A stretch of DNA of 64,000 nt from Podarcis vaucheri (lineage: Eukaryota). Made by a program: the position numbers and the translations under genes. This document shows positions 4,389 through 59,109 of the stretch, piece after piece. Each line of letters starts with the position of its first letter. Position 1 is the stretch's first letter. The notes below the pieces were generated by a model. That model saw nothing but the letters and a program-made list of their open reading frames with translations. It had not been told where the DNA came from and searched no databases. Location of the stretch: the NCBI GenBank assembly GCA_965113315.1, contig OZ220369.1, one strand, 5' to 3'.

Positions 4389-4868
4389 TTATTATTTGTA
4401 CCCCGCCCATCTGGCTAGGTTTCCCCAGCCACTCTGGGCGGCTTCCAACAAAGATTAAAAATACATTAAAATGTCACACATTAAAAACTTCCCTGAACAG
4501 GGCTGCCTTCAGATGTCTTATAAATGTCGGGTAGTTGTTTGTCTCTTTGACATCTGATAGCAGGCTGTTCCACAGGGCGGACGCCACTACCAAAAAGGCC
4601 CTCTGCCTGGTTCCCTGTAGCTTTGCTTCTTGCAGGAAGGGAACCGCCAGAAGGCCCTCGGCACTGGACTTCAGTGTCCGGGCAGAACGATGGGGGTGGA
4701 GATGCTCCTTCAGATATACTGGACTGAGGCCGTTTAGGGCTTTAAAGGTCAGCACCAACACTTTGAATTGTGCTCGGAAACATACTGGGAGCCAATGCAG
4801 GTCTTTCAAAACCAGTGTTATGTGGTCTCGGCGGCCGGTCACCAGTCTAGCTGCCACATTCTGGATTT
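4345..4868 (-). mobile_element. L2 (CR1 group) LINE 3' fragment with (TTA)n tail
   Basis: ORF2 C-terminus AARLVTG..DHIT..LKDLHWLPV.FR.QFKVLVLTFKALNG. Confidence 0.9.
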
Positions 4869-9444: not shown

Positions 9445-9640
9445 GTCGTTGTTGTTTAGTCGTTTAGTCATGTCCGACTCTTTGTGACCCCATGAACCAG
9501 AGCACGCCAGGCACTCCTGTCTTCCACTGCCTCCCGCAGTTTGGTCAAACTCATCCTGGTAGCTTCGAGAACACTATCCAACCATCTCGTCCTCTGTCGT
9601 CCCCTTCTCCTTCTGCCCTCCATCTTTCCCAACATCAGCA
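9445..9640 (-). mobile_element. RTE Bov-B LINE 3' fragment
   Basis: LMLGKMEGRRRRGRQRTRWLDS...WRALVHGVTKSRT plus a (CAA)-type tail. Confidence 0.9.
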
Positions 9641-10557
9641 CCCAAATCTCATGACATCTGTTGCAGGCAATATATGTGCCCAGGAAATGCTGAAATTGTC
9701 CCTGAGCGACCTGTCTGAAGTGGCAACTGTCCCTGGTCACTCTTCCCTTTTTTTGCTGCTGCCATGTTATATTGTGAATCCATCTTGGCTCTTTAGATGT
9801 TGGGGGAAGACAACTCAATGCTATCGGTAGGCCCCACACCAAAGACTTCTCCCCGCCCCCCTGCAGAAACAATGGCAGCAGTTTTTACAATATGGAAGAA
9901 TGGAATCCACCTTATGTAGAGCCAGGGAGTGATTACTTCCATCAGCCATGCAGCCTTTCAAATAAACTTGGCATACTTTGAAATCTGGTGCAGCTATGAG
10001 CTAGGTTCAAATTCCATCTCACTAGGGCTAGCCTGGGTTCACTCTTTTGGTCTTAGCTGCTCTCCTGCAATATCTACACTGTGGGGTTATAAGGATTGAT
10101 GGGTGTATTGCAAAATGGTATGAACTATCAAAAGTGTTATAGCCTTCTGAAAGGCTTGTGATTCTTATGCTAGGAAAAGATCATAAGTTATGGCTACAGA
10201 GGTTTATAGAAAAGCCCAAGTTAGGAGTTTGACAGCCTCCTTGAGGGAGGTATATGGACTTTTACCAGGTAGATACTCTGAACAGCAGTACCTTTTACAT
10301 TCTCATGGTGGTAGTGCAAAAAGTTAAAAAGGTCAGTGGTAGAGCTTGTGCTTGCATGCAGAAAGGTCCCACGATCAGTTTGCAGCATCTCCAGAGAGCC
10401 ACTGCCACTAAACAGAATGCACCAGATTACAGCAGAGGCAGGCAGCAGGTAGACCTGGCCCTGCTTAAAAGATTGCTGGATGATTTTTGCAGATCAGCTC
10501 CTGTTAAGCCACAGTAATAGAACATTTTCCCCCCCTCCCAATTGGTAGTAATTCAGA

Positions 10558-11111: not shown

Positions 11112-11117
11112 TTTATT
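11112..11117 (-). terminator. GAPDHS: Probable GAPDHS polyadenylation signal AATAAA
   Basis: AATAAA on the minus strand ~320 nt downstream of the stop codon. Confidence 0.65.
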
Positions 11118-11434: not shown

Positions 11435-11510
11435 TCATTCGTGCTCCTTGCTGTACATGTGCTTCAGGAGATCTACTACACGGCAGCTGTAGCCATATTC
11501 GTTATCATAC
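11435..11510 (-). CDS. GAPDHS: GAPDHS last coding exon (76 nt including TGA)
   Basis: (W)YDNEYGYSCRVVDLLKHMYSKEHE*; acceptor ctatag|. Confidence 0.95.
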
Positions 11511-12174: not shown

Positions 12175-12330
<156 letters not shown>

Positions 12331-13071: not shown

Positions 13072-13278
<207 letters not shown>

Positions 13279-13964: not shown

Positions 13965-14198
<234 letters not shown>

Positions 14199-14759: not shown

Positions 14760-15002
<243 letters not shown>

Positions 15003-15653: not shown

Positions 15654-15911
<258 letters not shown>

Positions 15912-15953: not shown

Positions 15954-16211
<258 letters not shown>

Positions 16212-16946: not shown

Positions 16947-17054
<108 letters not shown>

Positions 17055-17515: not shown

Positions 17516-17665
<150 letters not shown>

Positions 17666-19350: not shown

Positions 19351-19463
19351 TGGTAAGGAACTCCTGCCAGTTTCTTCACTGAGCTATCTGCCCACTGTAT
19401 TACCGTATACTGTGTTACAACAAACAAACCAGCAAGCAAATGCTCCTTTTGAAAAATCCTTAC

Positions 19464-19664
19464 CCATTGATCCCAACATGAAATTCCGCCATACGTTTCG
19501 GAGGTGGTGGTGGTGGAGGTGGAGGAGGAGGAGGAGGAGGTGGTGGAGCTTCTGGTTCTGGCTCTGGGGTAGGCGGTTCTGGCTGTGGGGTAGGTGGTTC
19601 TGCCTCGGGGGTAGGTGCCGGCTCTGGAGAGATTTTCGGAGGAGACCCTTCACTTATCTCGAGC
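19464..19664 (-). CDS. GAPDHS: GAPDHS Pro-rich exon (201 nt, phase 2-2) with internal ATG at 19492
   Basis: ttccag|G LEISEGSPPKISPEPAPTPEAEPPTPQPEPPTPEPEPEA-P16-KRMAEFHVGIN(G)|gtaagg; joins FGRIGR in frame. Confidence 0.93.
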
Positions 19665-20940
19665 CTGGAAGCATCAGAAAGGAGTAAGCATGCTGGCTTG
19701 GACAGAGGCAACTAAAGATCATATTGGCTAAACAGATTTTAATTGGTTTAAGTCATTCTCACTCCCCAGAACTAGAAGTCTATGGTAGGGGATGCCAGTA
19801 AAAATCATCCCCCTCCCTAGACTACCATTTCCAAGATTCTTTAATGGGCCATCATACTCCCATGTGGGTTAACCCAAGGAAATTCATTATTCCTGCTCCC
19901 CCCCCCCCCCAACATTCTTTATTCGACGGTTAGATCATTTATACAAGGCACGAAGATTTAACTTAAGGACTTTTCTAACAAGGATGGACTTCATATTGTC
20001 CTATGTTTCTCTCTCCCTCCCAGCGACCTTGGTTTACAATGATCTACACTGTGACATGTGACTCAAAACCATTGCACAGTGTTGCAACAAAAAGAGGAAG
20101 AGACCCGCTACTTAAAAAGAATTTCCAGATACCGTACTGGTCTACATACAAATTCTAGGCTTATGCACACTTCTTCTCGTCCTGTGCCGGGGGGTCTGAG
20201 TGGTCTTCCACTTGTCCCACACTTTCCAGACATGGGTCTGAATGGTTTTGCCTTGCCCCACCAGTTTCCCCCGGGAAATTCGCTCTTTAGCAATACAGTG
20301 GAAGAAATGACAATCTGCAGAAACCTCAATTGCCGATTGTTTCAATTCACCACTAAAGACTGGGTTTCCCAAGGGGAAAGGCGGTGGGGCAAACGGAGTA
20401 TGCCACAAGCATTTTGTTCTATGACAATTTCTGCTCCAGGGTTGAGTTCAGGAACTTGAGCTTCAACTTTGGACCAGAGGCTGGCTGTACACAGCAATGC
20501 TTTGATGGCTTCTGTGACATCATGAACCCCCTTCACTTCCATTAATTCCAGAGTCAGCTTAGCAGTTGCTCATATTGATATTTTTTTTAAGCCTTACATG
20601 TGATGCTTTAAAAAGATAGCCACCTAAAGCACAGGGGGAAGACGCATGACTAATCAACATTTACACTACTAGTATTCCTTTATTACAAAGATAGGAGAAA
20701 GCTTGGCTTACCATGCAGGAAAAATGAGCTCAACTTTCAATGGGTCTAACTCTGGATAAAATGCACAGCTACAACACACTCATTACAGGAATTATTTCTG
20801 GTGACCAATGCATATTACATGGTTTGCATTGAGCCAGGCAACTTGAGTTTCAAAATGGGATTTACTGTGTAATTAGGAAGCTTGTTTGCTCATTCCAGGG
20901 CAAGAACAACGAAATTAATGTAAACTTCCGATTTAGTATA

Positions 20941-21190
20941 CAGTCGTACCTTGGTTGTCGAACAGAATCCATTGTGGAAGTCCGTTTGATTTACGAAAAT
21001 GTTCAACAATCAAGGTGCGGCTTCTGATTGGCTGCAGAAGATTCCTGCACTCAATCAGAAGCCGCGGAAGTTGCCTCAGACATTTGGCTTCCCAAAAACA
21101 TTTGCAAACAGGAACACTCACTTTTGGTTTGCGGCATTTGGGAGCCAAAATGTTCGAGTCGCAAGGCGTTCAAGATCCAATGTATGCCTG
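20941..21190. mobile_element. Tc1/mariner-type MITE (older)
   Basis: TA-CAGTCGTACCTTGG left end with a degenerate right TIR ending CTG-TA. Confidence 0.65.
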
Positions 21191-22085
21191 TACATATCTC
21201 TGAGAGACTGTCCACTCCTTAATTTGCCAGTAGCTTTGTTTTGTTCTTGGATTAAACCAAGCATCCCGGAATAAGATCTTAAAATTGCTGCCTGCTAAGC
21301 TACTTCTGACAGGCCACATGCCCCAAAGGCTTGGAAATGGCAAACAGCTTCACTAATTATGTCATGATGCACCTCCTGTAAGACCACATTACACAGGACA
21401 GCCAAGTGGGGAACCCCAGTAAGTAACAATACATACCGTCACAAAGCAAAATAGCCTTGTAGACTGAAACCTGGAGGGAGGCCAAATATTTTAAGACTGA
21501 AGGGGGCCTCCAAGTCAAGGTTAACCAGAACACACAGTTTTCTCCGGAGTGAGATTCACTTTGCTATGCTTCTATGTAAAGTAGATGAATCCTTGCCATA
21601 GCAAAAGCTAGGATACATGAGAGCATAGCTGTTTTCTGTAGTTTCATCCAAGAGTTGAAGATTCCATCACACAATACACTGAGGCAAGCAAAGATAAATG
21701 GCAGTTCCAAAACATTCCAGTATTCCTGGCCACACTAAAGAGGGCTGGTCGCCTAGGATCACTAACCCAAACGACAACTTTGGGTGCTTCTGAACATGTA
21801 AACAAGCCTTCAATATGGAGAACAGTGAAAAGGTTTAATAAAAAATATTTTCATATCCAGATAGAACATGCTTACTTAACCAAATTTCAGTAAGCGCACA
21901 CTACATGCTAAAGGAAGTTCCTAAATAACTTACATCTGCTTGGGAGAATCTCACTTGGAGAAAAGTTCTCTTAAATGGGTTTCACTGAGGTTCTGGATAT
22001 TGCCTTACCCATTGTTGAACCTCATTTACAAATGAAGTTTAACAGACATAGAACAGGGTGGCTTTCAAACCATATATTGTGAACC

Positions 22086-22155
22086 TTTACTGTTATTTTT
22101 ACCACTATATATCTTACCTCTTTACTATTATTTTTACCACTATATATCTTACCTC
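22086..22155. repeat. 35-bp tandem duplication
   Basis: TTTACT(G/A)TTATTTTTACCACTATATATCTTACCTC x2. Confidence 0.9.
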
Positions 22156-22238
22156 TAGTTACATTGGCTTTACCAACTCACGGAGAAGGCTGCCGGTATT
22201 TAAGCATTCATCAGAACCCCCTCAAGAAATTTGCTTAC

Positions 22239-22303
22239 CTGAAAACTTTGACACTAACTGATGTGCCGCCACAATCCGGTGGCGGTGAGCAACTGCGATT
22301 CAT
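22239..22303 (-). CDS. GAPDHS: GAPDHS putative first coding (cassette) exon; whole exon 22239-22335
   Basis: Acceptor tttctag|, AGAATGA start, MNRSCSPPPDCGGTSVSVKVF(R), strong CAG|gtaagc donor in phase 2 matching the Pro-rich exon; locally retains CpGs. Confidence 0.72.
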
Positions 22304-25300
22304 TCTGCTGGCTGACCTATCTACCGTTTCTCTACCTAGAAATACTGAAAGAGGATTTCAGGAGGCTGGTTAACTTCTGCTCGGCTAAAGCTTGCTGCAG
22401 CTATTATCAAAGATTCCTTTGCTCCCCAGCATTTCTGTTTTTTCACCACCCATTCAAAACTGTGTTCTTAATAAGAATCAGGGACTTCTGGCCCAAAAGT
22501 GGTTATAAGAACAAAGAGCATCGGGGTAGTGGGGAGATAAGAAGGTCTGGCAATTTTTAGAAGTGCACCTCCAAATGTTCTCCAAGTAACTTGCTTTCCT
22601 GGAAATGTTAGTCTGAAAGACTAGTTCCTACACTGGTAGCAAAAAAAATGTTATTTAGAGGGATTACCAAAATTCAGATTGAAACAATAGATTTTTGGAG
22701 CCATCTTCAGAAGAACCACAGTCCAGTTCTACCCTACTGAGCAGATATTAGGAAAAAATCGTCAAAAATATCCCTGAAGATGAAGAGTAGCAACAGAAAA
22801 ATGCCTTATTACAGCAGCTCATTGACAGTTCCGAAAATTGTGAAATGGCTTTTTGTTATAACTTCAACAATGCAACATATACCATATTTTTTTATATATA
22901 CTGCTTGTATGCCAAAATGGCAATAGCAATACGACACAGAGGTGATTGTATCAGTTGCCTATCAAGGTCTTTTCAGCTTTCAATCTACTTTTTTGCTTCA
23001 GCATCCTGTGCAGAACCCAAGAATAAGTGGAGAAACGTTTGCCCTGGGGGGCATAGCAGAATGCTAGACAAACAAGGACAGCTATTTGCACAGTGCTCCT
23101 GCCCAGACCAGAAAGCAGATGATAGCCAAGGTTATATATGAATCAAGAGAGCACAGCTTCGCATTTGAAGACAGTTACATAAGCATGACTATCTACATTT
23201 GTGTTCCTGAGCCCCTTCGTTTGCATTCAGCAGGATGACTCCGCAAGTTTGCTTTATGTCCTGTTGGCCCCATTTGTATTGAGTCTAAGCTACAGGTTTA
23301 TATAACCATGATTATATGGTTTGTTACAAGCAGAACAAGTTGCTTCCCCTGGTCATTTTAACCTAGGCTTCTGCCAACGGCAAATAGGAAAATACTCATA
23401 AAATACAAAAAGGCAGAGAAAAGAATAAATACAGTGTCTTACCATCCTGAGGTTCCAGTATTAATTTCTCCCGCTGAGTTATAGTGGCTTTGCAATACAA
23501 AACCAGTATCACATTTGTGTCTCACCACTTCAACCTTGAGCAGGATCACCTTAGTCATATATTATCTCTTATTTGTATAAAAATGGATACTGGATGACAC
23601 TTCAAAAATGCAGATGATGCTAGTAACACGTTAAGGTGGGGGTTTTCCAACCTTCCCTGCTACAGCCACCATCAACCATCAATTATTTCTAGCAACGCTG
23701 CTTGCCAGACTTTCAGCTCCACTAGTGATACTTAGTGGAGCCATGCTTTAGAGATGGTACCTCTTTTGCCAACCAAGTGCTTCCCATACAAGGAGATATT
23801 AAAATGAATCAAACCAAGGAAAGAAAGAAGCAAAGATCTTAGTCAAATGATATTTCATGTAGAAATCCTGCATTTTCCCTGATTTTGTTAAAATGTTGCA
23901 TGCCAAACAATAAATATCTTGGCAACCGCAATTGGAAGAACAGAAGCCATTTTGTTTCAGAACAGCTCAGGTCTGCAACCTCCCAAGCGTATTATTTCTA
24001 AATTGCTCGGTACAGAAAAACCTTTCTATTCCTTGGCAGACAGCCCCATGGAATTTTGCAACCCATTGCAGATTTTACAACGCATTTTCACAACAGTGTA
24101 CGGTAAAAAGGGGAACTTAGCAATAGCAATTTTGCAGCATTGCTGTGAAAACGACATTGGCCTAAGCATCAATTATTTTGCCGCCGTTATTTGGTGTTCT
24201 TGGATCTTCCGGTTTACGCAGCTTCCATGAATGCAACAGCTTGGAACTGTATGACAGCCACAGAAGTTTGACAAAATGAGTATTAACCAGATATATTTTC
24301 TTCTATTGCTTCATTACCATTTTGGCCTTCCATACGTGTACCTAGTACATCACGACAGAAGCAACAGTCCATCACCGAAGTGAGTACATTCCCATCCTTC
24401 TGCAGACATCTAATTGCTGCAGTGACGCTCTGTGGCCAACAGCAGAGTCCCAAACCCATCCAAGAGTACATTAAGCAGCAACCACAGCCTAGAGCAGCAT
24501 CGGCAGGCACATACAGTCCCTGAGCATTTTACAACCATCACGTCCTAGCTGCAGATGCTGTGACCTTGAGACTGTATTGGTGCAGCAGAAAAGTCTGCCC
24601 ACACCCTACTCCTATGCCGTTAGATGTGCCAAAGCTCATAGGTGCCAATGGTCTTAGTCAGACCTAGAGCTAGTTGCACAGTCTAATCATGCTATACATT
24701 TCTCAGTATAAACCTATGGCACCCATTGCAGTGTACCCTTGCTAACAACCGGGATCCAGATTTTCAGTTAGAAAATGGGCTCTTATCTCCTTCCTGCATT
24801 CCTGGAACAAACAGTTTGCATTTGACCTCTACTGACCAAAGATAGGAAGTCTGTTTTTTTAGCCTTTAGTCTAAGCCTAGGCATGTTTCCCTTCTTGTTG
24901 TTTGTGGGGAGCCTGGAGCAAGATAACAGTTAGCTGTCTGCTCATATTAGCAATTGAGACTTACAACCTCCTTCACAGAAAGACTATATACTTGATCTGT
25001 GGATCACCTCTACCGAAGGTCCATCTATTCGCCTGCTGTAGTCAATAATGCAGGCTTGCAACATATTCATGGTCTCATTTCCAATGTCTCAATATTTCAT
25101 TATGATTGCAGTTTTAAGCAGACATTGTGTGCACTTAAATTTTGAGCTACAGCTCCAAGAAAGTAGATTTTTTCGAACAGGCTATCAACGTATAAAAAGT
25201 GTAGAATTAAAAAAAATGCTTTATATTCTGCCAACAGGGCACTGGATGAATTTATAATGGTGCAGCATATTTGCAGAGTCTCATTCTTGCAATGAGCACA

Positions 25301-26399
25301 CGGTTCTGCAGCCTAGTTTCTACCAAAAATAAGAGTCAGATTAATTTCCCTTCTAACAATGGCATTATTTGCAAGGAAGTAGCTTTTCAGTTTCTGAAAT
25401 CCCTGAGGGAGAATCCTGGCCATCTTTCAACTGCTGCTCTCTGGAGCGTGCCTGGCTGCACGCAGACATCACTGCTTCCTAATCTCACCGATGTGGTGCG
25501 ACAGTCACATGAACAGGACGGATCCATACAATTAGCAGTTGATCTGGAAGAAACCAACTCGATCGCTAGGTAACAGGGGTCTTTGCTTTCCTACCTCTGC
25601 AAAAATCCCTAAGTATTGAAAACTACCCAGCCAGGGTAAAGGCAATGTATATAAACATGAACCAGTTCCTTCTCTCACCTGGAACTGATACAGCAGAACA
25701 AATCTCTACAACTTATTATATTTTGGTTTATGCAAAATATATACAATAAAAATGATGTGATATTATTCCTCAAAGGGGATGAGCAGTTTAAAAAAAAGAA
25801 ACCTGGGCTTATACCTACAGAAGGGAGTAGGTGGGACAGAATTTTTCATTAAATTCCTTTTTTATTAAAAAAAAACCACAGTAAGGGAGATGCTCCTTCC
25901 ATTGATGAAGAAAAGTAAAAAGGCAGTAAAAAAGCTCATCTAACAGTCCTCAAAATGGAATGGTCCAGGCTTGACTCTTCAGTGGTTTTTCTGACGCAGT
26001 TGCATTTCTAGAGAGATCCATGGTACAGAGGCAGATGAATCTGCATCATCATCTCCTACTCTCAGTTGTTTAGTGCCTTCTCTAGCAGCAGCTGAAGCTT
26101 CCCTCCTGGCGCCCGACTATGGGGGAACCTTCCTTGGTATCCAGCATTCTTGTCACTGCAAATACTTTCAAAGCAAGCCCTAAAGCTTCCTTACAGCACC
26201 CTTACCATTCACCCATCAAGGGCAACATTCTCTCTCCAAACTGCTGCATTGTAGCATCAAGCAAACCTGCAATCCTGTAATTTATTCCCCTTTACACCCC
26301 AACCTTTCCTCCAAGGAGACCGAAGTGGCACACATGGCTCCCCTTCTCCTCCCACTCCGTCCAAATTTAAGCCCTGAAACCACCTTGTGGGGTAGGTGT

Positions 26400-26620
26400 G
26401 TTTGTGTTTATTATCTTTATATACTACTGTTTCTTCCAAGGAGCTCAAGGTGGTGTGCATGGTCCTCCTTCCCCATTTCATCCTCACAACAACCCTCTGA
26501 GGTAGGCTTAGGCTGAGAAGTGGTGACTGGCCCAAGGTCACCCAATACAGTGGACTGAGTGCGGGTTTGAACCTGGTTTCTGCCATGTCTTAGTGAAACA
26601 CTCTCACTGCTACAGCACGC
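26400..26620 (-). mobile_element. Old tRNA-derived SINE (MIR/Squam3-like)
   Basis: CCTCACAACAACCCTCTGAGGTAGG...GCCCAAGGTCACCCA core; relatives at ~3580-3720, 5060-5270, 16520-16690 and 61960-62120. Confidence 0.6.
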
Positions 26621-27639
26621 TAGCTGAGCTTCCCCTTGCCCCACACCTCCTGTCCTCCAAGTCCCCAAACCAGTCCACTACAACAGCACCCTCCACCATC
26701 TATGCCCTAAAGCCATTTAGGGACTGTTCCTGTCCACAGGCCTGCCCACTCCCCACCCCCCAGCCTCCTGCTATCTGCTTCATAGCACTGCAGAAAGAAG
26801 TATCGTGTTGCTAAGGAGTTGACTCATGCTTCAGAGCTCTCCTAATGCTCTAGCTCTTGAAGGCAACTCCCCGCAACAACCACACGTACAATCGACCCCA
26901 CCCCAAAACATGACCCCTTCTCTGAAGACGACACACATCCACTTTGCCCCATGCCTCTCTTGCCCCCTCATGCAGCCCTTCTCAAAACTGTACAGAGCCA
27001 AGCTCACGGTGGTCTTCTGGGGTCAACCCCCAACATAGCGCAGTCCTCTCAGACATCTTCTCTCCTTCCGCCTCCATTTTAGTTACCCAGCCACAGTCTA
27101 TTTCTTAACTGGAAAGATGCCTAAGCCACCTTTTCAATACCTCAGCCCACTAGTGTGGTTTTCAGGGGTTAGAGCGCCAGATTAGGGACCTAAGAGAGCA
27201 GGTGTCCAAGTGGTGGTTCAGCTGCTCACTTTAGGGGGGGCTCTTCCCCCCCCCAGCAACTTACCTCACAGGGTTTGTGAGCTGCCGAAGCAGAACCATG
27301 TGCACCTTGAGAACGAAAAAACCCACACATATGTACGGAAAGAATGAATAAAAGTCATCAGAAGGCAACGAGCAATTTAAAAGCACTGAATACGGAGGAT
27401 ATAAATGCATTAACAGGCAAATAAATGTCAAGACCATCGATTTTTAAATTAAACAATCCCCATTCGCCCAGCCTTGCAGCCCCCACCCACCCACCCAGCT
27501 AGCATCCTCTATAGGGCGCCCCTTCCCCCCCCCCAGCATCCTCTATACGACACCCCCCACCCCACCCCACCATGGTCGACTGGACAACCCAGACCACCCC
27601 CCAGACCCTCTAGGCCCACCCTAAAGCCCCCTCTCCAGC

Positions 27640-28140
27640 CGCAGCATCCCGCCCCACTCACAAGTCTATCCAAGCGACAGACCAGATGGCGTCGAACAAG
27701 CGAAAGCAACGGCCGGGCTGCAGCTTATATACCCTCTGCTGCCAGGCAACGCCTAAGCTCCCGCCCCCGCCTCCTCCTCCCCCCTCCCCGAACGCGCTCT
27801 TGCGGCACCTGCGCGCACGCGCGCCTGCGCTTGTTCTACTTAGCAAGTCAGCCCGAGGCGGCGCGTGCGCTCGCGCGCCCCCTCGCTCGAAGCCCATTGG
27901 TACCCGGCCCCATCCGCGCACAACGGCCGCGGCGCGCGCTTCCCTCCTTCCCGCATGCGTAGTTCTGCCCTCTTGGGCATCTTTCGCGGCTCGGGGTTTT
28001 TTTTGTGTGCGCACCTGCTGCCCAGGTGAGGGGAAGAGAGAGCAGGGAGGAAGGAAGGAAACCAGGGCCGCTGGGCATTCTTTGTTTTCTGTGGCCTCCT
28101 CCCCTTGTGCATCGTTGAGGCGCCTTCACACGTGACGGGT
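27640..28140 (-). promoter_or_regulatory. GAPDHS CpG-island promoter
   Basis: TATATAA at 27725-27731 (minus), GC boxes, GCGC-rich NRF1-like tracts, CCAAT at ~27896-27900, CACGTG E-box at ~28128-28133, YY1-like CGCCATCT in exon 1. Confidence 0.75.
27662..27706 (-). other. GAPDHS: GAPDHS putative non-coding exon 1
   Basis: ATG-free, starts ~25-30 nt downstream of TATATAA (TSS approximate), ends at donor CTT|gtgagt. Confidence 0.7.
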
Positions 28141-38317: not shown

Positions 38318-39071
38318 CTGTAGGGCAAAAAGAAAGTCAAGCTTTAGTAATACAATTTAAGACATTTATATCTCACCAGATCTTTAGAACAACCAAAGGC
38401 TGTTAACACCACAAGATGTAACAAAAACACCACAAATAGAAGATACACACGCTTTTATTGATCAAGATCCAAACATGGGCCCCCTAAAACACCTTTGCAC
38501 AGCTTCCTGAGCCTCAATAATAAAGACAGATACTGGTGGGTCTCCAATTCTACTATCTTGGAGCCACTAACCAGAAAGCTAGTTTTAGTCTTCTTTAAGC
38601 AAAATTCCCATAGCAGATCCTACAAAGCCGTAGCTGCTGGATAATCTTCCCCTATAAAGCTGACTGAACCACCCCAATCACTTCAGTTGCTCTTATCAGT
38701 ACAATGCTGGGTCAGCCCCAAGAACAGGTGTGGGGAGACTGTGGCCTCCCTAGACATTACTAGACTCGAATTCCCATCATCCCTGAAGACCGGCTATGCT
38801 GGCTGGTGTGGATGGCAACTGGGAGTCCTGCAACACCTGAAGATACCCACTCCTACCCTGGACCATCTCCTCTGTTGAACCTCTTCGTCCAACAGCAGCT
38901 CAATCTCCTCAGGAGAAAGAAAAGAATTGCCCTTGAGGGCCTCATTCCTCCACTCCGCTAGCAACGTAAAAGGATCCAGCAGTCAACTGAAGGCCATGTT
39001 TCATCTGAAATGCCAAGGCAATACTATCATGCACCACGTTAGCAGGGTGCTCTCCCTACCCCCCTACTCAC

Positions 39072-39700
39072 CCTCCGGAGCTTGCGGTCATTCTTGCCAC
39101 GGGAAGAAACAGACTCTGTCTCTGTGTACGGAGGTGGTGGCGGCGGCGGAGGGAACCCATTGCTATCGTCATCTCCGTTTCTCCTGTTGCCAAGTCTCCC
39201 ACTCGATGTACTGGCATGATCCCGGTCCTCACGGCCACCTGCCTTCTGCTTCCGCCGCAGCGCTTCCTGCAAGATCCGGTCATCGTAGTGTGATCGGTCC
39301 AGGTCCCTCAGGTCATCCCTGCTCCGGCTGCGCCGTCCGCCATAGCGGTCATAGTCGTCGCGGGAGTCCGGGGAATAGTCGCGGCGGTGCCACTCGTCAT
39401 CATCGGAGCCACGTCGGCCGCGGCTCCTGGGCCGGTCTGGATAAGGGTCCCGGTCCAAATCATCCAGAGCATCCACCGAGCGGGATCGGGGCCGCCGGCC
39501 ATAGCCTCGTGGCGGAGGGTCCTCGTAGTGGCCGCGCCGCAAGGGGGGTAGCAAGCGCCTGGTCTCGCTGCTCCGCATGCTCTCCTCTTCCACGTCACTG
39601 ATGGGAGACATGGCCTGGCCGCGCAGCCGCCCCAGCCCCTGCCGCAGTTCGTAGCGCCGATCGTCCTCATGCAGAGAGCTCAGTTCGCTCATCACGGAGG
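39072..39700 (-). CDS. LSR: LSR exon 9 (629 nt), Arg/Asp/Ser-rich cytoplasmic tail
   Basis: MSELSSLHEDD...RSRSVDALDDL...RSRSRDDL...PPPPYTETES; ag/gt boundaries. Confidence 0.95.
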
Positions 39701-39866
39701 CTGGAAAGTAAGTGCGAGAGAGGGTCAAAAGCTTCTAGGCCACCGTGCTGCAAATGAATCATCAGCTAGTTATCATGCTCTCCTAAAAAACAGCTGTCCC
39801 CGAGGGCTCCTTTTGGGGAGCCCCATGGTGTGCTTCCACACGTAAAGAAGGACCCAACCAAAGTAC

Positions 39867-55380: not shown

Positions 55381-57068
55381 AATTACAATCAGATTTCTGA
55401 CACTCCCCAATCCTGCCATATCAAGTACCTGCTGCCTGCAAATCTACCAGCCCAAGCAGAACATTTTTCATTGAAGCCTGTGATTTGTCAAACTGTTAAG
55501 TGACTCAAGCACCTATCACCCAGTCTCTCTCTCCACCACAGAAGACTCCTAATACACACAATAATGTGAATACTGCTGCAACACCACAATTTCTCTTTAG
55601 AAGCTTAGAGGCATAGCATTCTTTGACTGTATGCTCTCACACTGAATTCTTGGCACCTCCATTTAATCTCAAGTATCTGGGCTGAGAAAGACCCAGGAAG
55701 GGGAGGCTGTTACCAACAAGAGTTAACAAAAACTCAGCTATCTAGGCTATTGATTTTGGCTTTAACATGGATTACCGGGAACTCAAGCACTGAGTTTACA
55801 TGACAAAATCAGTCTCTTGTCAAGTATGGCCTGTAGAGTGCTGCTACACAGAACTCTGGGGACTGCACTGCCTGCAAATTCAGCTTTTGTAGCTTGAGGC
55901 CAAATAATCAAAAATTCAATTTCCCAAAGGCTTTTAGGATTAAGTTTTCTCGCAGAACTGAAATGCTCTCTGCACATTAAGCGGTTGTATGTTAGGCTAG
56001 GGGAGGAGTTGTCCTAGCCAGGAAGCACAGCTAATCATTCCAGCACTTGTAAACTTATTGTTCTCTAGCTCCAGCCAACAGAGAAACTGGGGCACAGGAA
56101 GGTGTGGAATCTGGTCGCACCCAGTTGTAATCCTGGCACTTTGCCTTTCTTCTTCCTTGTGCTACAGATAAGACGTAGGTTTAAAAAAAGCCCCATGAAA
56201 CTCAAAACAGAAAGCCTGGGGGAAAAATACTTCAGAAGTGAGACAGTGCTTTATATGTGTTCAAAGCACTTCACATAATGTTACCCAATAATCATTACAA
56301 GAGTCCTGTGATATTTTTATTTTATTTATGTGAAAATTTTCATCCCATCCTTCTAGGGCTTATGCACCACTGAAGACACCTAAACATTTGACCAGGGGTG
56401 GTGAACCTCAGGCCAAATGCAGTCCTTCAACCCTCAGGCTATGCTCCTCCTCTGGCCCAAGTTATTTTGTCTTTAGAATGCATATCCTGCTGTTCTCACC
56501 AAAGGAACCTATGACACCTAGCAATCTGAGCCACAGCAAGAAGACTGCAAACACAGCAGCCTGCACCAATGAAACTGACAGAATCACAGGACAGCAGGAA
56601 CTGGGTACCAAAAAATCAAGACTAACAGCAGAATAAAGCCACCGTGAAGCTGTACCAAGCTGTGAATCTGTAGCCACAAATAAGCCACAGTGTTTTAAGA
56701 TCATGGCCTTTGTCTCCAAGATAAGCCAGACCTGACTGAAAGACACTTCCAAAAAAATATCTTCCATTTGTCCAGCTTCCAGATCTTGGCTTCTGTTCCA
56801 TGAGCCTGACCTGTCTACATCCTTAACTTTTATCATCCTGTGCTCACTTAGAACATTGCTTTCTCTTCATACATACATACCTGCATTGAGAAAGCCAATC
56901 TGATGCCACAGTTGGCCTATGGGACTTTGATCTAGGATCAGATCGCCGCCCAAACAAGAAGCTCTCTGGGTGACTTTGGCCCCAACATTCCCAACCTAAC
57001 CTACCTCACAGAGCAGCTGCTATTAGGGTTCTTGGAGACAGCCACCACTCCTGTTGCTATTTACTTAC

Positions 57069-57410
57069 TATTGGTGATGGTGATGCGCCGGCCCTGGTAG
57101 AAGTCCCCAAGGGTCACTGCATTGCCTTGCTTGGTAGCTACAACCCGCACCGTCCTGGAGTTGTCCTGACACTCCACGTATGGGTTGTACCCGGGGTTGT
57201 TCTGCTGCAGCTGGTTGGTGATCTGGCTGTCCTGGCCGCTGGGGTTAAAGGCATCTGCCAGGCGGCTCCGGCAGTAAGACTTGTACTTCCACGTGACAAT
57301 AGGTGGTTGGGTGGCCGAAGTCTGGTAGTTGCACTGGAGAGTGACAGGTTGAAATAGGATGACCACGTTGAATGGGTTCTGCACTGTGACTTGCATTGCA
57401 GAGGCAGGAT
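57069..57410 (-). CDS. LSR: LSR exon 2 (342 nt), Ig V-set domain
   Basis: (D)PASAMQVTVQNPFNVVILFQPVTLQCNYQ...WKYKSYCR...VATKQGNAVTLGDFYQGRRITITN. Confidence 0.97.
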
Positions 57411-59109
57411 CTGGAGATAAGAGCAGACAGTCAGACAGGACGACATCGTAATGAGCAGAAAAGTAGTAGAAAATGCCACAGAGCTCCCTCCTGGAATGTT
57501 TCTCCACCACAGTCAATTACTACGACCATTGCACACTAGAATCCAGGACGACTGTGAATAATCCTGCCTTATCCTCTTAGCAAACGCCCCTTACGCTTTT
57601 TAACAAATTCATTTCAGGGGCATGCAGTCAGCCCTACCACCTAGTTAAGCCTGCTTCCCTGCTTCATCTTTCAAGAGGAAATAAACATTTAAGTCTCAAG
57701 TGTGGAAATCAGACATGGTGTTTGCAAGCTCAGTGAAAACACAGCATTTTCTGTAACTAAATGCTGGCCATCTAAACATGTCAAATGTTGGTGGACAAGG
57801 CAGGAAATATCCCACAGCCTAGCCTCCTGGGAATCTGATATATCTTTCTACACGTGAGGTGAGCTAGAAAGCTTTGCTGTCACAAATGCAGAAGCAAATT
57901 TATTAAGCCAAGGGTTTTTATCACTACTTCAACAGGGAACAAGAACTGACATTAGCACAGAGTAAGGAAATGCACTCTCACAGGCAAGAGAACCATTATG
58001 CATTTAATTTCATTCATACCCTTAACCTGTTTCTGGCTAACAGACAGAAAAGAAAGCCAGAGAGTTGTTATCGGCATCTTTCAAACAAAAAGAAATGCAG
58101 GATTGTGGGGTGAAAGAGAGAGAGAAATGAACCACATGAGCCTTTGTTTCTAGTCTGTCTTCAAGGAATCTTTCTCAAGACGATCTCTTTCCTTGACTCA
58201 CCAGGCTTTATTTTATCTCAAATATTTATATACCACATTTCACACAAAAAACAAGCACAAAGGTTTGAGAGTAACATTTTCTCCAACGCTCTGCATTTTA
58301 GACACTTTCACAACCCAGCTGCCTACTTTCTCTAAACCATAGGTGGGAGACCTCCAGCACTAATCTGGCCTACCACAGGACTCAATTTGACTTGCAAATT
58401 TCCCACAAATCATCCCCACCTGCTCTACACCTGAGCATTTTTTTTTCTCCTCCAAAGGAAATGCTTTGGATTCAAAACACTGGAGGAAGCACTCTGAATC
58501 CAAACTGCTTCCTCTGCAGAGAGCGGGAAATGCTCCATTTTTAAATCAGCTGATTGGTGGCTACACCAAGCCTCTTTGAAGATGCACTCCCAGCACCAAT
58601 CAGCTGAATGGTGCTGGAAGTACCTCTTCAAAGGAGGTTGCAGTCACTACTGATCAGACGTCTCAGCAACCTCCATTGAACTTTGACATGCGTCAATCAC
58701 AACTGCATCATTAAGATAGCCGGAGGCCTTGCCCAGCACTCAGCCTGCAAGGGGTGGGGGCAATTTAGTCCACCACCAGCCAGTTCCTCACCCTGCTCTA
58801 AACACAGAACTAGAGCTACACATGCTAAACCAGGAGGGCTAATCAGTAACTGAAAAACAGCCTGAAGAAGGGGAAACTTGCAGCAGCTTCTGGGTTACAG
58901 AAAATCGTTTCCCATTCTGAAAGGAACAAATGACTTCCTATCGATGGGCTGCTAACCCAGCATAAGTTATTCTCATCTTCCCCAGTAATCCAACTGACTC
59001 ATTAGCCAAGCCTTGTAAATAAGCCTACATGGAACTTGCAAATCCACAAAGACATACTTGCAGTACATTAGCCACACAACAGTTTTTCCAGTTCAGCAGA
59101 GCATTCATA

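Follow-up and report, generated by a model that had tools for sequence, protein, structure and literature searches.

A start-codon cassette exon in the GAPDHS gene of a Podarcis wall lizard, predicted to set a proline-rich exon as coding sequence or 5' untranslated region

In the lizard Anolis carolinensis, the gene GAPD-2 (GAPDHS) carries a second exon of 103 nucleotides (nt) containing an ATG, which governs the presence of a proline-rich domain, the next start codon being located directly after this domain (Kuravsky et al. 2011, BMC Evol Biol 11:160, PMC3224139). Expressed sequence tags (ESTs) from this species retain the 103-nt exon in testis and skip it in regenerating tail and embryo, while the case of Gekko was left undecided (PMC3224139). 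A 2023 review restates the Anolis switch, summarises that mammalian GAPDHS is anchored in the sperm tail and describes a truncated somatic GAPDHS form in mammals as reported in tumours only (PMC10499166). Here, we analysed a stretch of 64,000 nt from contig OZ220369.1 of Podarcis vaucheri (assembly GCA_965113315.1; the window, with positions counted from its first letter), which contains a GAPDHS gene of the same arrangement. A cassette exon 2 setting exon 3 either as proline-rich coding sequence or as 5' untranslated region (5'UTR) is the best overall explanation of this locus, and one we hold with high confidence. The finding is a correct rediscovery of what is already known, since the mechanism has been in print for Anolis since 2011 and Zootoca has both products annotated; what it adds is an exon map for this genome, the strong conservation of the start-codon exon among lacertids and a hint that the arrangement, together with a SVSVKVFRLE motif, may date from a sauropsid or amniote ancestor. 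A first-pass annotation, made from the sequence alone, had pointed to a cassette-exon mechanism in Anolis GAPDH-2, in agreement with the published work (PMC3224139).

The GAPDHS gene consists of 12 exons on the minus strand, extending from 27706 to 11435, as derived from the sequence, the list of open reading frames (ORFs), the junction sequences and a coordinate-only script, which found AG/GT ends at 11 of 11 introns. Exons 4-6 span positions 8-100 of the Pfam profile Gp_dh_N and exons 8-11 positions 1-156 of Gp_dh_C, both collinear and with the frame uninterrupted, and the catalytic motif S-N-A-S-C-T-T-N-C is present, with NASCTTNC located in exon 8 and the Ser codon being split ahead of it. 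Over exons 4-12, the encoded protein is identical at 99.7% to Podarcis muralis, 99.4% to Podarcis raffonei X2, 97.8% to Lacerta agilis and 96.6% to Zootoca vivipara, and at 92% to Anolis sagrei and pythons; the lacertid proteins matched at 96.6-99.7% are named testis-specific GAPDH by NCBI. Judged by these exon-by-exon identities to lacertid testis-specific GAPDH proteins, the gene is the GAPDHS (GAPD-2) orthologue of a Podarcis wall lizard; comparison with the sequences aligned in PMC3224139 independently sets it apart from those of Anolis carolinensis and Gekko gecko. Compared with solved structures, exon 10 scores 82.8 bits against testis-specific GAPDHS and 74.6 bits against somatic GAPDH. 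Every search and identity count proceeded one exon at a time, the joined model being used solely for ORF lengths. A profile query (A2) aligned with MAFFT from canid GAPDHS and five exon rows of the gene, four of the core and that of exon 3, retrieved sauropsid testis-specific GAPDH proteins; a search of representative proteins with exon 10 returned mostly fragments of genomic ORFs and canid GAPDHS and no full-length squamate protein, and a search with the N-terminal region of Lacerta X1 gave two clusters only, being swamped by proline-rich candidates.

The 5' part of the gene carries the features on which the predicted switch depends. The promoter lies in a CpG island with 68% G+C and an observed/expected (o/e) CpG ratio of 1.07-1.21, compared with 0.28 in intron 1, and between the TATA box and the exon 1 donor (27731 to 27662) the script found no ATG at all. 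The same donor at 27662 is used in an Ensembl/UniProt model of Podarcis muralis (P0281), in which it is joined to exon 4 (...WIDL), and this supports its position. Exon 2 is preceded by a pyrimidine-rich tract with an AG acceptor and followed by the donor gtaagc, and contains a single ATG at 22303 (ATG1) within agcagaATGa, i.e. with A at -3 and without G at +4; when it is included, the script places an in-frame TAG stop upstream within exon 1. Its product is MNRSCSPPPDCGGTSVSVKVF followed by two bases of an Arg codon. In exon 3, the earliest ATG in any frame is located at 19492 (ATG2), where the reading is KR-MAEFHVGING. Inclusion of exon 2 makes 22303 the first ATG and yields an ORF of 416 amino acids (aa), the N-terminal extension amounting to 79 aa with 34 Pro (43%). 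With exon 2 skipped, the leader comprises exon 1 and the first 172 nt of exon 3, i.e. 217 nt free of ATG, and is followed by a 337-aa ORF starting at 19492. The first-pass annotation had claimed precisely these elements, namely an ATG-free exon 1 under a TATA/CpG promoter, an internal exon of 97 nt supplying an ATG and a phase-2 donor, a proline-rich exon with no ATG ahead of 19492, and a 416-aa or 337-aa protein depending on exon 2; direct reading of the sequence, the CpG ratios and the script bear out all of these, with coordinates, phases and both ORF lengths being exact.

The arrangement resembles that of Anolis carolinensis GAPD-2 in its non-coding exon 1, in an ATG-bearing exon of about 100 nt that starts the proline-rich domain, in the second ATG following this domain and in the removal of the domain from the protein by exon skipping. 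The two differ in the length of the exon (103 nt versus 97 nt in Podarcis), in the lineage (iguanian versus lacertid) and in the tissue pattern, which in Anolis is given by ESTs.

All 21 of 21 residues of the exon 2 peptide (MNRSC...SVKVF) recur unchanged in the 409-aa X1 of Lacerta agilis and the 411-aa X2 of Zootoca vivipara. The gecko Heteronotia shares 14/21 of these residues; in pythons, turtles and crocodilians, it is the C-terminal portion that is retained. The ten residues SVSVKVFRLE across the exon 2/3 joint show no substitution in any of the long forms compared from gecko, pythons, turtles and crocodilians. At the level of this protein comparison, exon 2 is a genuine coding exon. Conservation of its ATG and frame in related lizards had been named beforehand as a point on which the proposal could fail, and both are conserved in two lacertid genera. 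The exon 3 Pro/Glu repeat is more variable, 55-56 of 66 residues matching Lacerta agilis and Zootoca vivipara (10-11 differ).

Both predicted products have counterparts among annotated proteins. Pairs of a long (392-416 aa) and a short (336-337 aa) form are annotated in Zootoca, Python, Alligator, Crocodylus and several turtles; in the protein collection searched, the short form is on record for Podarcis raffonei, Sceloporus, Crotalus and Tiliqua and the long form for Lacerta agilis and Heteronotia. RefSeq lists X1 with 337 aa and X2 with 411 aa for Zootoca vivipara, X1 with 409 aa for Lacerta agilis and X2 with 337 aa for Podarcis raffonei, the two 337-aa proteins beginning with MAEFHVGING as predicted from ATG2. 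GAPDHS of Zootoca, Lacerta agilis and Podarcis raffonei shares with the window the exon 2 peptide in the long forms, the MAEFHVGING start in the short forms and 96.6-99.4% of the core, and differs in length and sequence of the exon 3 Pro/Glu repeat, the poly-Pro run being longer in the window. The annotation of sister species and the Anolis paper support the existence of both mRNA forms.

These data suggest a model according to which transcription would start at the TATA/CpG promoter with the short ATG-free exon 1. If exon 2 is included, scanning ribosomes would reach its AUG first, with A at -3 favouring its use, and reading from AUG1 through the exon 2/3 joint and all of exon 3 would place the 79-residue extension on a complete GAPDH. 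Skipping of exon 2 would leave an AUG-free leader that directs translation to AUG2, resulting in a fish-type enzyme of 337 aa. By analogy to the Anolis ESTs and to mammalian GAPDHS, the long form would be made in testis and anchor the enzyme in the sperm tail, whereas a short soluble form would be made elsewhere; in somatic tissue, an N-terminal peptide of the acetyl-AEFHVGINGFGR type would be expected from it. For the species of the window, we infer from the same analogies that inclusion of exon 2 would be testis-specific and that the long form would be attached to the fibrous sheath of the sperm tail. The claim of the first-pass annotation that an ATG-bearing cassette exon decides between coding sequence and 5'UTR holds as a structural reading and matches both the Anolis mechanism and the sauropsid isoform pairs.

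Sequencing reads were available from four runs of a related organism, which were mapped to 19400-25399, a stretch that has exon 1 outside it. In the search for runs, this relative carried about half of the sampled words, and one other organism, probably the source of the DNA, carried all of them. Exon 3 is covered in run X9 at a contig depth of 9-13.5 and in the raw RNA-sequencing run X23 by three reads whose first mate maps to the plus strand, the orientation expected of minus-strand RNA. At 19464, X9 has a loose end that, read as reverse complement, is exactly the first 30 nt of exon 4; this confirms the splice between exons 3 and 4. The transcript of exon 3 comes from the minus strand and continues by splicing into exon 4. 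At the other end, the match of the X9 contig (depth 13.5) stops precisely at the acceptor 19664, and this stop together with the coverage of exon 3 and the zero depth of exon 2 weakly fits an mRNA lacking exon 2 in that sample.

Several points weigh against the proposed cassette switch. None of the four runs gives exon 2 a depth above zero, and coverage holes prove nothing according to the warning of the tool; the junctions 27662>22335, 22239>19664 and 27662>19664 occur in no read or contig among the joints listed for the four runs over 19400-25399, a listing without the loose end at 19664. The runs stem from a relative with about 5% intron divergence and not from the individual of the window, their tissues being coded. 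The isoforms of the sister species are computed gene models, seen as proteins and not as exon structures. The start of transcription, and with it the 5' end of exon 1 at about 27706, is a guess from TATA spacing.

The better surviving of two alternatives makes exon 2 an alternative first exon, transcribed from a separate testis promoter in intron 1, so that the two proteins would result from alternative promoters and not from splicing. In mammals, the ATG-bearing GAPDHS exon is the first exon, and MAFFT pairs sauropsid TSVSVKVFRLE with mammalian N-terminal TNVTVVQLLR, suggesting that the two exons may be homologous; moreover, no exon 1-exon 2 junction was seen in the four runs. Exon 2, however, has a canonical AG acceptor after a pyrimidine-rich tract, and the region upstream of it lacks a CpG island (o/e 0.36), though testis promoters need none. 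Turtle models of 416 aa extend N-terminally beyond the exon 2 peptide with a sequence weakly resembling the Podarcis exon 1 translation, and Anolis ESTs from testis and from tail/embryo differ solely by the internal 103-nt fragment near the 5' end (PMC3224139). We consider two promoters improbable. Still less probable, to a degree that we would give it hardly any weight, is a constitutive exon 2, with the 337-aa form being a by-product of annotation or of leaky scanning to ATG2 and no splicing switch existing: ATG1 lacks G at +4 and no skipping junction was directly read, but A at -3 provides ATG1 with a good context, RefSeq annotates short isoforms separately in many species, Anolis ESTs physically lack the exon (PMC3224139) and in X9 depth is present on exon 3 and absent from exon 2. 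A chance origin of exon 2 was rejected, its peptide being conserved across lacertids and sauropsid long forms.

Table 1. Features of the GAPDHS locus in the window
Feature	Position	Strand	Evidence
Promoter CpG island with TATA box tatataa (27731-27725)	27600..28000	minus	Sequence, base composition
Exon 1, non-coding, ATG-free	27662..27706	minus	5' end approximate; donor gtgagt at 27661/27660
Exon 2, 97-nt cassette exon with ATG1 (22303-22301) and phase-2 donor	22239..22335	minus	Sequence, script
Exon 3, 201 nt, proline-rich coding sequence or 5'UTR, with ATG2 (19492-19490, context aaacgtATGg)	19464..19664	minus	Sequence, script
Exon 4, NAD-binding GxGxxG motif	17525..17621	minus	Pfam Gp_dh_N, E=1.6e-7
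Exon 5	16948..17054	minus	Pfam Gp_dh_N, E=8.5e-10
Exon 6	16008..16098	minus	Pfam Gp_dh_N, E=8.3e-5
Exon 7	15655..15773	minus	39/39 residues the same as in Podarcis proteins
Exon 8, catalytic Cys motif NASCTTNC	14784..14865	minus	Pfam Gp_dh_C
Exon 9	14005..14156	minus	Pfam Gp_dh_C, E=2e-20
Exon 10	13096..13258	minus	Pfam Gp_dh_C, E=4.2e-17; top solved structures are testis-specific GAPDHS
Exon 11	12176..12273	minus	Pfam Gp_dh_C
Exon 12, coding part, TGA stop 11437-11435	11435..11510	minus	Junction sequences, script
Candidate polyadenylation signal AATAAA, about 320 nt past the stop	11112..11117	minus	Sequence only

Further observations concern the 5' exons and their introns. A minus-strand ORF of 118 codons (27658-28014) crosses promoter, TATA box and exon 1, and the Podarcis muralis entry A0A670IL01 (P0281, 406 aa) derives from the equivalent promoter ORF, with exon 1 joined to exon 4 and exons 2 and 3 skipped. 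The promoter-crossing ORF is almost certainly an artefact of annotation; the joining of exon 1 to exon 4 may reflect a genuine minor isoform. Translated, exon 1 (..LFDAIWS..) bears a weak resemblance to the N-termini of turtle 416-aa proteins (MLSFDAIQT.., P0297 and P0300), in a match too short for significance; this hints that turtles and lizards may share exon 1 and that turtles may splice it to exon 2. Intron 2 contains a multi-copy repeat at 20937-21180, where contig depth reaches hundreds to thousands in all runs and is zero in the flanks; with its many variant letters and chimeric joints, it is probably a short interspersed element (SINE) or another transposon fragment.

Exon 3 contains a poly-Pro run at 19495-19575, a (CCN)n microsatellite encoding 16 Pro, which is longer than in Lacerta agilis or Zootoca and probably polymorphic in length among species. 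This run was skipped as a repeat in read mapping, and the runs of the relative hold about half of the sampled exon 3 words. The 201 nt of exon 3 are a multiple of three with equal phase at both ends, so that its skipping keeps the frame, and a UniProt model of Crocodylus porosus (P0262) shows such an exon-3-less join, SVSVKVF-S-FGRIG. A search for homologous proteins with exon 3 alone gave no match, the length window leaving out full-length proteins and the query being of low complexity.

Outside of GAPDHS, the window contains further ORFs on the minus strand. Those at 57061-57516 and 39039-39728 may be an Ig-domain exon and an Arg/Asp-rich cytoplasmic tail of an LSR/ILDR-type receptor, a neighbour that would fit synteny with the GAPDHS-bearing human region 19q13.12; neither ORF has a match in Pfam or the ESM Atlas. 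The ORFs at 4474-4857 and 9468-9872 have sequences that we assume to be typical of C-terminal regions of long interspersed element (LINE) retrotransposons, and neither has a Pfam match at E<=0.01. A search of the window against Rfam gave no match.

Comparison with more distant relatives places the two start codons in an evolutionary context. The gapdh-2 proteins of fish and coelacanth start at the same position as the short form, with the pattern M-x-E/D-L/F-x-VGINGFGRIG and 335-337 aa, and differ in that the annotated proteins have neither a proline-rich extension nor an upstream start-codon exon. The first-pass annotation had likened the start of the short form to fish GAPDH-2, and the same pattern is indeed found in carp, pipefish and coelacanth gapdh-2, which identifies ATG2 as the ancestral start codon. 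On this comparison of protein starts, the proline-rich part of exon 3 occupies what is a former leader.

Mammalian GAPDHS (3H9E, 5C7L) has the same core, with 76% identity to canid GAPDHS over exons 4-12, a proline-rich N-terminal extension of similar length and, just past the first Met, a short hydrophobic motif aligning with the lizard exon 2 motif, TNVTVVQLLR being placed by MAFFT opposite the sauropsid SVSVKVFRLE. In contrast to the lizard protein, many mammalian proteins have no Met immediately ahead of the core. To our knowledge, mammalian GAPDHS has no upstream non-coding exon and is expressed in testis only. Annotated proteins of turtles and crocodilians show the same pairs of long and short isoforms and the same SVSVKVFRLE motif. 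Annotation also lists GAPDHS-type proteins for emu (Dromaius), tuatara, alligators, crocodile and many turtles (P0266, P0258, P0251 and P0254 among them).

According to the view of 2011, birds and all reptiles but lizards lost GAPD-2, which among amniotes was kept by lizards and mammals (PMC3224139); the annotated proteins of turtles, crocodilians, tuatara and emu conflict with this view. The computed gene models and short motifs compared here raise, at about even chances, the possibility that the two-start architecture, i.e. a fish-type AUG behind a proline-rich domain derived from 5'UTR together with a SVSVKVFRLE start-codon exon, is ancestral to amniotes and not lizard-specific. A literature search found no paper in the library searched that discusses a shared sauropsid architecture or a link between the sauropsid and mammalian motifs.

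GAPDHS illustrates how one exon can serve as coding sequence or as 5'UTR, set by a small upstream exon carrying a start codon, and a sperm-specific anchoring domain could have arisen out of former leader sequence. If true, an amniote-wide architecture would revise the view of 2011 that GAPD-2 survived in lizards and mammals only, and it would suggest that the sperm anchor depends functionally on a specific conserved peptide as well as on being rich in proline.

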